NCBI GenBank assembly: GCA_002269645.1
Contig: NIVC01000438.1
Coordinates: 287,379-351,378 of the forward strand
Direction: 5' to 3'
Source of the DNA: Macrostomum lignano
Lineage: Eukaryota
Length of the DNA: 64,000 nucleotides
The position numbers and the translations under genes were made by a program. Shown in pieces: positions 7,474-26,085 of the stretch. The notes beneath the pieces were generated by a model. It was not told the DNA's origin and searched no databases. It saw only the letters and a list, made by a program, of their open reading frames with translations. Position 1 is the stretch's first letter. The number at the start of each line of letters is the position of its first letter.

Positions 7474-10400
7474 CACCCGTGTCGCAATTATATGGTGGCT
7501 TTACAAGCATTTTTCTGCACGAAAAAAAACGGCATAGTAAGCTAACTTCTGCATGCAGATATGCATTTTCTACATGCATTTTCTAGCCTGACTGGAAAGC
7601 GTGGCGGCAATTTAAAATCGTTTATTTGCGTCGCGTGCACGCCTGCTAGCTAGCTCAGCTCATTATGGATGGGGGCTGAAGTGAAGCGTAACACAACACA
7701 AATGGCCGTACACAGAGAAGGGCAGCACGCTCTGTGCTACGCTCCCAAACGAGCTAGTAGTATGTTTAATACGCTTTACGTTTAATACACATACACATGA
7801 AATCTTGACAATTAGTGACGAATGAAAATAGTCATTCCTACTTTCTTCTAGGCCTAGTATTTCGCGCCGTAGTCATGTGATCTTATTAGCCTATACAGTT
7901 TTAAATCTATTTTCTTTTCTTTTATATTATATTATAGCTTCATGTTGTACCTATAAATTCTCCCTAAATATGGTTCTTTTCGATCTTAAGACTACAATTC
8001 ATTTAATTTTAGACCAACTTTAGTCCCTTTTTAATTAGCTTTATTTTTGACTAGTTCTAAGGCTAAGGGCTAAGGCCAAGAATATTAATGTAAGCTTAAG
8101 CCTAAGAAGGCTTATTAGCCTCTATTGTCTTTTAATTTATTTGCTCTATAGACTATAGTTAAATACCATGCACATTTCAATAAACATTTTTGATAAATAA
8201 GATTTGACCATATATTTATAATTTAAAAAATATATATTTTAGTCTAGGCTAGGCCTAGCTACATATAATAAAAGTTAAGTTATAAACAAACATATTCAAT
8301 AGAATACAATTATGAATATCAAAAACTAGTATAAACTGACTAGCTAGGCCACTTATTACACAGGCTACTAGCTATTTATTAATAGGTCTACTATATATTA
8401 TATAATATGAGTCATAGTATTTTTGGCTTAACTTTCTTCTTTTTTGCCTTAGCCTCTAGCCTCCACCTTCCCTTCCTCTCTAGCACTTGCCACTTACCCT
8501 AAGTTGCAAATCTAGAAAATTTTTAAGGAGGGGCCAAGCTATACCAAGCACTATAAACCCTATATTGGAAAATAGACCTGGCATAGTTAGCAGTCCAAAA
8601 AAGTATGGTCAAAATTTCTTTGGCTGCAACTGAAGGGATCCGCCCTTGTTACCCTTTCTTTTTTCCAGCCGTACCTTTTAGCCCTACCCTCTCCTTCCTT
8701 CTAGCCCCTAGCTTCTCTCCTCTAGCCTTATCCTCTTCTCTCCTCTAGACTTCACCCTCTTCTCCCCTCTAGCCCTCACCCTCTTCTCTTCTCTAGCCCC
8801 TACCCTCTTCTCCCCTTCAGACTCCACCTCTCCTCCCCTTCCGACCTCACCCTCTCCTCCCCTTTAGATCCCATTCCCTTCTCCCTTCCAGACCCCACCC
8901 TCTCCTCCCCTTTAGACCCCACCCTCTCCTCCCCTTCAGTCCTCACCCTCTTCTCCCCCTCAGACCCCACCCTCTCCTCCCCTTCAGTCCTCACCCTCTT
9001 CTCCCCTCTAGAATCCACCCTCTTCTCCCCTCTAGCACCCACCCTCTTCTCCCCTTCAGATCCCACTCTCTCCTCCCCTTCAGACCCCACCCTCTCCTCC
9101 CCTTCAGATCCCACTCTCTCCTCCCTTCCAGACCCCACCCTCTCCTCCTCTTCAGACCCCACCCTCTCCACCCCTTCAGACTCCACCCTCTTCTCCCCTT
9201 CCAACCCCACCCTCTCCTCCCCTTCAGATGCCACTCTCTCTTTCCTCCCTCTCAGACCCCACCCTCTTCTCCCCTTCAGATCCCACTCTCTCCTCCCCTT
9301 CAGACCCCACCCTCTCCTCCCCTTCAGACCCCACCCTCTTCTCTCCTCTAGCCCCTACCCTCTCCTCCCCTTCAGTCCTCACCCTCTTCTCCCCTCTAGC
9401 CCCCACCCTCTTCTCCCCTTCAGATCCCACTCTCTCCTCCCTTCCAGACCCCACCCTCTCCTCCCCTTCAGATCCCACTCTCTCCTCCCTTCCAGACCCC
9501 ACCCTCTCCTCCTCTTCAGACCCCACCCTCTCCACCCCTTCAGACTCCACCCTCTTCTCCCCTTCCAACCCCACCCTCTCCTCCCCTTCAGTCCTCACCC
9601 TCTTCTCTCCTCTAGAATCCTCTTCTCCCCTTCTTCTCCCCTTTATCACCCTCTTCTCCCCTTCAGACCCCACCCTCTTCTCCCCTCTAGAATCCACCCT
9701 CTTCTCCCCTCTAGAATCCACCCTCTTCTCTCCTCTAGCCCCCACCCTCTTCTCCCCTTCAGATCCCACTCTCTCCTCCCTTCCAGACCCCACCCTCTCC
9801 TCCCCTTCAGACCCCACCCTCTCCACCCCTTCAGACTCCACCCTCTTCTCCCCTTCAAACCCCACCCTCTTCTCCCCTTCCAACCCCACCCTCTTCTCCC
9901 CTTCCAACCCCACCCTCTTCTCCCCTTCAGATCCCACTCTCTCCTCCCTTCCAGACCCCACCCTCTCCACCCCTTCAGACCCCACCCTCTCCACCCCTTC
10001 AGACTCCACCCTCTCCACCCCTTCAAACCCCACCCTCTCCACCCCTTCAGACTCCACCCTCTTCTCCCCTTCCAACCCCACCCTCTTCTCCCCTTCAGAT
10101 CCCACCCTCTCCTCCCTTCCAGACCCCACCCTCTCCACCCCTTCGGACCCCACCCTCTCCACCCCTTCAGACTCCACCCTCTCCACCCCTTCAGACCCCA
10201 CCCTCTTCTCCCCTTCAGAACCCACCGTCATCCCTTTAGATCCCACCCTCTTCTCCCTACCCTTCTCGCCAACACTTCCACTCCTTACCCTCCTCCCTAT
10301 ACCCTCATTCCCTTACCCTCATTCACTTGCCCTCCTACTTTCGCCCTCCTTCGCTATCCTTCACACCTACCGTCCTCTACTCTTCCCCCCTATCCCCTCC

Positions 10401-10562
10401 TCTACCCACCTTCCCTCTACCTCCTCCCCTTACCCTTTACCCTCTTCCCCATTTGACCCTACCCTCAACCCGGGCTGTCTTACCCTACCATAATCGCTGC
10501 CCTCTACCGTCTTTATGATCTACCCCTCTAGTGTTCTCTGCGGTCTACTGTCTTCCAGGCCT
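7474..10562 (+). repeat. Left terminal inverted repeat (~3.09 kb)
   Basis: Reverse complement of 22972-26085. The mirrored ORFs 9228-10493(+) / 23041-24330(-) are identical except for one extra 8-aa unit. Confidence 0.95.
8740..10230. repeat. 24-bp C/T-rich minisatellite (CCTTCAGACCCCACCCTCTCCTCC-like) inside left TIR
   Basis: Degenerate tandem array; source of the PSDPTLSS / EGEERVGS pseudo-ORFs; mirrored at ~23290-24800. Confidence 0.93.
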
Positions 10563-25900: not shown

Positions 25901-26085
25901 CTGAGCTAGCTAGCAGGCGTGCACGCGACGCAAATAAACGATTTTAAATTGCCGCCACGCTTTCCAGTCAGGCTAGAAAATGCATGTAGAAAATGCATAT
26001 CTGCATGCAGAAGTTAGCTTACTATGCCGTTTTTTTTCGTGCAGAAAAATGCTTGTAAAGCCACCGTATAATTGCGACACGGGTG
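22972..26085 (-). repeat. Right terminal inverted repeat (~3.11 kb)
   Basis: Reverse complement of 7474-10562, with one more 24-bp satellite unit and at least one SNP (ATATGGTGG vs ATACGGTGG near the end). Confidence 0.95.

Follow-up and report, generated by a model that had tools for sequence, protein, structure and literature searches.

The 64,000-nt stretch of genomic DNA of the flatworm Macrostomum lignano analysed here (contig NIVC01000438.1, positions 287,379 to 351,378 of the forward strand; hereafter the window) holds, at positions 7474-26085, an 18.6-kb transposable element of the KDZ (Kyakuja-Dileera-Zisupton) superfamily. The element ends in terminal inverted repeats (TIRs) of about 3.1 kb, which are flanked by a target-site duplication (TSD). 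The 12.4 kb of unique sequence between the TIRs carries two intact genes, one for the KDZ transposase and one for a second, accessory or helper, protein (gene 2). Both genes are convergent and each start lies 0.3-1.1 kb inward of the inner edge of a TIR. No further copy of the 18.6-kb element was found within the 64-kb window. The boundary features, numbered from the first letter of the window, are the following.

7467-7473, no strand: left TSD, GAAGCTT, read directly and the same as 26086-26092
7474-10565, plus strand: left TIR, 3092 nt, terminus CACCCGTGTCGCAATTATA
8732-10257, plus strand: 24-bp tandem array of the left TIR, 63.5 units of CCTCTCCTCCCCTTCAGACCCCAC
22969-26085, minus strand: right TIR, 3117 nt, also terminating in CACCCGTGTCGCAATTATA
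23277-24826, minus strand: 24-bp tandem array of the right TIR, 64.5 units
26086-26092, no strand: right TSD, GAAGCTT, read directly

The arms were delimited by an inverted-repeat search and a gapped alignment of the two arms. The search returned two ungapped blocks, 7474-8533/25026-26085 (1060 nt, 100% identical) and 8516-10232/23326-25042 (1717 nt, 98%), and the repeat reaches 10565 and 22969 on its inner sides. Over the full arms (3092 versus 3117 nt) there is one substitution and there are 25 gap bases, which is approximately one unit of the 24-bp repeat. This array, with about 64 units per arm, makes up half of each arm. The copies of GAAGCTT abut both termini directly; a 7-bp reading of the duplication fits while 6- and 8-bp readings fail, and a 7-bp match of the flanks would be expected by chance in about 1 of 16,000 cases. 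The kilobase-scale TIRs and the TSD that had been proposed in a sequence-only reading of this DNA were thereby confirmed.

The transposase gene occupies the minus strand from 22640 to 19556.

22392-22640, minus strand: exon 1, from the first ATG, with an N-terminal Cys/His cluster, C-x2-C..C-x2-C..C-x2-C..H-x3-P-x-H
21859-22305, minus strand: exon 2
21665-21769, minus strand: exon 3
21200-21524, no strand: 21-bp tandem array in the 478-nt intron 3, open in frame
20879-21186, minus strand: exon 4, LDGCFG motif
20446-20798, minus strand: exon 5, YDIACK, HAYGH..CQ and TDGESCE motifs
20269-20364, minus strand: exon 6
19556-20154, minus strand: exon 7, with the stop codon

The exons were mapped by tblastn with homologs, and frame-preserving GT..AG junctions were enumerated, one junction being judged by eye. 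Since the array in intron 3 is open in frame, alternative acceptors within it are possible. All introns of the seven-exon model are GT-AG and the joined exons give an open frame of 718 aa, so that the intact spliced KDZ transposase seen in the sequence-only reading stands. Fragments of minus-strand open reading frames already match the Pfam KDZ family, and the full protein matches PF18758 at E=6.5e-39 with 134.3 bits (gathering cut-off 26.6) over profile positions 3-213 of 217. Its top homologs are two M. lignano proteins with 33-34% identity. In an alignment of flatworm, amphioxus and fungal KDZ proteins, D396, E444, E447, H418, H422, C426 and Q427 are invariant, and D291 of the LDGCFG motif is an aspartate in all eight sequences that cover the region. 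The N-terminal Cys/His pattern aligns with those of M. lignano and amphioxus homologs; the Pfam CxC1 and CxC2 models gave no match at E<=10, and Pfam detected neither a SWIM nor a CxC nor any other domain besides KDZ in the 718 aa. The closest KDZ proteins outside Macrostomum have CxC1/CxC2 clusters, not SWIM. Among the proteins compared, the KDZ protein of Schizophyllum commune (P0019) bears a long C-terminal extension with an H-R-D motif, which by eye resembles a fused dioxygenase domain of the TET/JBP type.

Gene 2 lies on the plus strand from 11657 to 13213.

11657-11714, plus strand: exon 1, begins at ATG
11954-12075, plus strand: exon 2
12151-12276, plus strand: exon 3
12380-12476, plus strand: exon 4, in which the candidate GTF2I-like domain begins
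12939-13213, plus strand: exon 5, with most of the candidate GTF2I-like domain and the stop codon

Splice sites were proposed from reading 11500-13300; the joined exons stay in frame, all four introns are GT-AG and the product has 225 aa. Along its entire length this product matches the UniRef protein A0A1I8GVQ9 (P0003) of M. lignano with 100% identity. The identity with a deposited protein validates the model independently, marks M. lignano as the host and bears out the spliced second gene that had been read as facing the transposase. Only three relatives, all from M. lignano, came out of an exhaustive HMMER search that covered 1.84 billion representative proteins; the members of the family have in common a core of about 75 residues, 13 of them invariant. 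Exons 1-4 are bracketed by a direct repeat of about 155 bp (11347-11499 and 12592-12748; 99% identical, 1245 bp apart). Its second copy sits within intron 4, which measures 462 nt here and about 70 nt in the homolog at locus L002 described below; it could be a duplication or an insertion into the intron.

The second protein had been taken for an HMG-box protein, and this part of the sequence-only reading did not hold. No Pfam match of any kind, to an HMG box or otherwise, was obtained at E<=10 with the full protein, its paralogs or the isolated conserved domain, and the N-terminal 73 aa, a low-confidence region of the structure model, matched no HMG box in the PDB at E<=10. The Plus3 domain suggested by the UniRef name ('Plus3 domain-containing') gave no Pfam match at E<=10 either; the name is probably an artefact of automatic naming, because the paralogs bear unrelated automatic names. 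The AlphaFold model of the full protein has a pLDDT of 53 overall and is confident over residues 115-192, and its top fold matches in the PDB are GTF2I domains. A model of the core only reached a pLDDT of 84.3 and a pTM of 0.70. In a Foldseek search of the PDB with this core, GTF2I domains took all ten top places (TM 0.64-0.71, probability 0.75-1.00), and the matches ranked next stayed at a probability of 0.12 or below. A profile search of the PDB aligned the domain end to end with 2dn5 and 2dn4 at E of 0.7-1.2, and hhalign of the core against the same two entries, a comparison chosen after the fold match was known, gave 80.6% probability and E=1.3e-5 over 70 columns. We conclude that residues of about 118-190 probably form one divergent I-repeat of the GTF2I/TFII-I type, with a predicted DNA-binding fold. 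With the HMG box falls the fungal-style pairing of transposase and HMG protein that had been proposed for this element.

The termini and the gene pair were followed into other M. lignano loci. At L002 (NIVC01001309), the gene 2 homolog P0004 (34% identity) lies on the plus strand at 10001-11375 and is convergent with a minus-strand KDZ gene (17171-20625), the product of which is about 45% identical to the window transposase over the aligned segments. Upstream there is a CACCCGTGTC terminus at 4892 followed by a tandem array at 6405-7877, and an inverted counterpart of the array starts at 21184 and continues past the end of the locus. The window and L002 agree in three of the intron positions of gene 2. 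At L006 (NIVC01000227), the KDZ protein P0009, encoded on the plus strand, faces a gene 2 homolog of the P0005 type on the minus strand (29019-27868); P0009 is 33% identical to the L002 transposase and 29-50% identical to that of the window in tblastn segments. Because the arrangement recurs in L002 and L006, with transposases that are only about 33-45% identical, the two-gene layout is no isolated case and characterises a lineage. The recurrence across such divergent loci also means that the pair is old relative to the divergence of these lineages, its position and orientation having been conserved. The proposal of an undescribed two-gene KDZ lineage in an animal therefore survives in its convergent pairing and not in its HMG partner.

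Between the loci L005 and L006 the identity is 99.6-99.9% and sets in abruptly at 5002/5004, a boundary that reads CATCAGTGTCACAATCACG, with terminus CATCAGTGTCACA. As their left flanks are unrelated, they represent two insertions of one element, so a relative of the window element has moved. A shorter relative at L001 measures 9.9 kb and has 249-bp TIRs, the terminus CACCCGTGTCACA and a 6-bp TSD. Neither tblastn nor a profile search of the six-frame translations found a gene 2 homolog in L001 or L005. Across five lineages the termini can be aligned as CAYCMGTGTC, with C1, A2, C4 and G6-C10 invariant; the 10-nt terminal motif of the window element is common to the KDZ elements in L001, L002 and L003/L004 and occurs in a variant form in L005.

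Several further observations were made at these loci. A perfect palindrome with arms of 1.5-1.9 kb, 100% complementary, is located between the KDZ gene and the gene 2 homolog (L006 21643-27414, L005 22370-27963), and the two copies of the L005/L006 element differ in their arrangement there, which may explain why the helper was not seen within L005. A 125-bp segment at the junction of unique sequence and array in each window TIR (8514-8637 and 24921-25045) is 89% identical to L002 15233-15355, in the interior of that element; apart from this segment, the window arms and L002 have no nucleotide similarity. Three loci contain copies, 94-99% identical, of a 13.4-kb unit (L003 6588-20018, L004 6609-20218 and L007 from 6663) that is bounded by its own inverted repeats of 85-99 nt and lacks a KDZ gene. 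The unit contains a truncated gene 2 homolog (P0006/P0007) and a 24-bp array that is 79% identical to the array of the window. A KDZ-type terminus GACACGGGTG is present at 19775 in L003 and 19975 in L004, and no left-end terminal motif was found within 10 kb for the element in L003/L004/L007. The unit may be a KDZ fragment that was mobilised or duplicated inside another element.

We consider it likely that 7474-26085 is a young, structurally complete and autonomous-looking two-component KDZ transposon of the cut-and-paste type, with a transposase and a putative DNA-binding helper. This reading draws on direct observation of the anatomy, the intact frames, the identities of both proteins, the recurrence of the pair, the common termini and the two insertion sites of a relative. 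We infer from them that the element may be active at present, and that the helper, judging from its modelled fold, may bind DNA and act in transposition. In such a scheme the KDZ transposase, a DDE-type enzyme, would presumably cut at the conserved CACCCGTGTC termini and reinsert the element with a 7-bp staggered cut. The helper would recognise the ends of its own element, with the long subterminal 24-bp arrays or the unique TIR sequence as the likeliest targets, and would recruit or regulate the transposase by analogy with the Myb-like protein of PIF/Harbinger and with TnpA of En/Spm. Each gene would be transcribed inward from a TIR-proximal promoter, as in MuDR; since the start of each gene lies a short way inside a TIR and the gene is directed inward, the identical arms or their vicinity are the probable site of transcription initiation.

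Some points weigh against this interpretation. Both genes within paired TIRs and a TSD were seen in full only in the window copy, as the right ends of L002 and L006 lie beyond the sequence covered, and a single copy of exactly this element was seen. Likewise, the 7-bp length of the TSD has a single insertion as its basis. The near-identity of the 3.1-kb arms could also stem from gene conversion, not from recent insertion. L001 is a KDZ element without a helper gene, so the helper is either not universally needed or supplied in trans. Finally, the Pfam GTF2I model matched neither the full gene 2 proteins nor the isolated domain at E<=10, and the GTF2I assignment comes from a predicted structure, based on an alignment of four to five sequences, and from a directed profile comparison.

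The explanation that survives best next to the two-component reading accepts a genuine KDZ transposon and regards gene 2 as a captured or de novo passenger without a role in transposition. Such passengers are known in kind, as fungal KDZ elements bear assorted extra genes, for example TET/JBP genes (PMC11343200, PMC12730594). The absence of gene 2 from the L001 relative, and the truncated homologs in L003/L004/L007 with no KDZ gene nearby, would suit a dispensable gene. Against this, the pairing, the orientation and the place beside the opposite arm have been retained through a divergence of both proteins to about 33-45% identity, and the intron positions of gene 2 are conserved. Moreover, the only conserved domain of gene 2 has a predicted DNA-binding fold, and the lack of any family member from outside M. 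lignano among the 1.84 billion representatives searched leaves no candidate for a host source gene. We therefore regard the passenger explanation as unlikely. A stronger version of the two-component reading, in which M. lignano KDZ transposons are obligate two-component systems with a GTF2I-type helper acting on subterminal arrays and the I-repeat of TFII-I shares ancestry with a transposon-born module, would be a long shot.

Another possibility is that the 3.1-kb arms are two independent inverted copies of a satellite-bearing non-autonomous repeat, which would make 7474-26085 a composite. The arms do consist mostly of the satellite-like 24-bp array, a similar array occurs in L003/L004/L007 without a nearby KDZ gene, and there the arm is part of a larger repeated unit with other inverted repeats at its borders. 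Nevertheless, each arm has as its outermost 10 nt the motif that ends the short-TIR KDZ element of L001, where it directly flanks a KDZ gene. A single 7-bp TSD flanks the whole unit, and L002 repeats the order of terminus, array, helper gene, KDZ gene and inverted array, which leaves a composite origin quite improbable. An assembly error, either a fold-back chimera or a collapse of haplotypes, could have produced the inverted duplication without any such element in the animal. This is suggested by the near-identity of the arms across 3.1 kb and by the repeat-rich nature of M. lignano assemblies, and we find it hardly credible in view of the 24-bp unit and the one substitution by which the arms differ, the 12.4 kb of unique sequence with two intact genes enclosed by them, the matching 7-bp flanks at the outer ends, the same architecture on the independent public-assembly contig of L002 and the independent prediction of the gene 2 product from another assembly.

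The rest of the interior holds repeats and nested insertions.

10566-11550, plus strand: C/T-rich tract of degenerate repeats separating the left TIR from gene 2, families D3-D6, GC skew -0.71
15002-15466, no strand: nested MITE-like insertion, 43-nt TIRs, 98%
15938-17296, plus strand: nested Tc1-like element, 27-nt TIRs, decayed, transposase split over three frames
17319-17499, no strand: MITE-like derivative of 181 bp, with a terminal repeat of the type seen in the adjacent Tc1-like element
18597-18978, no strand: 29-bp tandem array
19122-19340, no strand: MITE-like insertion, 49-nt TIRs

No counterpart of the C/T-rich tract of 10566-11550 was found on the right side. The Tc1-like copy at 15938-17296 gave matches to HTH and DDE_3 families over its three frames. 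The sequence-only reading had noted no TET/JBP gene inside the element, and the searches agree with it. Pfam on whole plus-strand frames of 11,560-16,100 gave no match, and six-frame stop-free stretches of at least 45 aa in 13,214-19,555 gave Tc1-type matches only, with no TET/JBP or other third gene. Rfam families were not detected in the window.

Outside the element, the flanking genes are of animal type and include an ASC channel, Mab-21, ankyrin repeats and an X-family DNA polymerase. On the right side, a 14/28-bp array (TTTGCTTGCCGAAC...) and adjoining sequence at 27025-27721 and 28929-29266 are 76-85% identical to the internal array region of L005/L006 (10838-12126); between the two segments there is a fragment of a mariner-type transposase (28105-28770, Pfam Transposase_1). 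The 18.6-kb element may thus adjoin a remnant of another KDZ family. Further on, at 36229-38307 and 41603-45242, there are two neighbouring paralogous amiloride-sensitive channel (ASC) genes with long low-complexity tandem-repeat regions, N-terminal or internal (GGQGG and APGAK repeats). The window is unusually rich in tandem arrays of 14-45 bp (36 TRF rows).

The KDZ elements are among the least characterised superfamilies of eukaryotic DNA transposons. In a host animal that is open to laboratory transgenesis, the locus and its relatives provide complete ends together with a conserved terminal motif, the length of a TSD and a second gene that recurs and has a predicted DNA-binding fold. Should the helper prove necessary, KDZ would become a further two-component system beside Harbinger and En/Spm, and a minimal set of transposase, helper and ends would be testable as a genetic tool for flatworms. 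A GTF2I-like fold in an invertebrate transposon protein, if the structural assignment holds, would also bear on the origin of the DNA-binding repeat of TFII-I.

The TFII-I family proteins are multi-repeat transcription factors of vertebrates; one member, GTF2IRD2, is fused to a hAT transposase, and the origin of the I-repeat is obscure. The C-terminal domain of the gene 2 protein has, in its model, the same fold as the GTF2I I-repeats (PDB 2dzq, 2dn5, 2dn4 and others) and has in common with them the motif pattern LR..V..l..K(Y/F)...G.P..(I/V)P...P......L..(I/L)L...e.(I/V).FV. It differs in its identity of only 15-22%, below Pfam detection, and in that a single repeat is present in 225 aa, encoded by a transposon in a flatworm host.

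Division of labour between two element-encoded proteins is familiar from other superfamilies. In PIF/Harbinger elements, which have 3-bp TSDs and short TIRs, a DDE transposase is accompanied by a small Myb/SANT DNA-binding protein that is thought to bring the transposase to the ends. This provides a working analogy only, in that two separate genes are involved; neither protein of the window element is homologous to its Harbinger counterpart, and the function of the helper is a presumed one here. In MuDR of maize two genes converge from starts that lie within or close to the long TIRs, and in En/Spm (CACTA, maize) subterminal repeat arrays are bound by the second element-encoded protein, TnpA. 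The likeness to both is one of layout and logic, the window transposase being KDZ and not MULE or CACTA. The MuDR-like layout that had been suggested is accordingly sound for convergent genes pointing inward from the TIRs and does not extend to homology.

Within KDZ, only Zisupton is well characterised as a transposon with well-defined ends, and has 8-bp TSDs, according to a 2025 survey (PMC12730594). The fish element (Bohne et al. 2012, summarised in PMC12730594 and PMC9297572) combines short TIRs with a single long protein bearing CxC4 and SWIM, and Zisupton genes of nematodes are multi-exon and encode up to about 1400 aa (PMC9297572). The window element resembles Zisupton in a multi-exon transposase of the Pfam KDZ family (PF18758), an animal genome, TIRs and a TSD, whereas its 7-bp TSD, its array-bearing 3.1-kb TIRs, its transposase of 718 aa without detectable SWIM and its separate second gene set it apart. 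It is not Zisupton in the strict sense, which has 8-bp TSDs (7 bp here and 6 bp in L001) and the combination of SWIM and CxC4.

The 'gigantic' KDZ1-3 transposons of Cryptococcus are multigene elements of 9-11 kb, KDZ1 having 236-bp TIRs and an 8-bp TSD; they were caught moving experimentally, and KDZ mobility has so far been known there (PMC11343200). KDZ1, KDZ2 and KDZ3 are similar to the window element as large KDZ elements with several genes, TIRs and TSDs, but they are fungal, their extra genes are unrelated to gene 2, and no GTF2I-like helper or kilobase TIRs were reported for them. None of the three articles (PMC12730594, PMC11343200 and PMC9297572) describes a GTF2I-like helper, kilobase array-bearing TIRs or a 7-bp TSD. 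We found no literature on KDZ elements in Macrostomum or on a GTF2I-like transposon helper, though a Repbase entry is possible. The fungal Kyakuja and Dileera elements with TET/JBP genes (PMC12730594) likewise combine a KDZ transposase with a second gene; in the window element, which has no TET/JBP, the companion has a fold of a predicted DNA-binding type and is not an enzyme.

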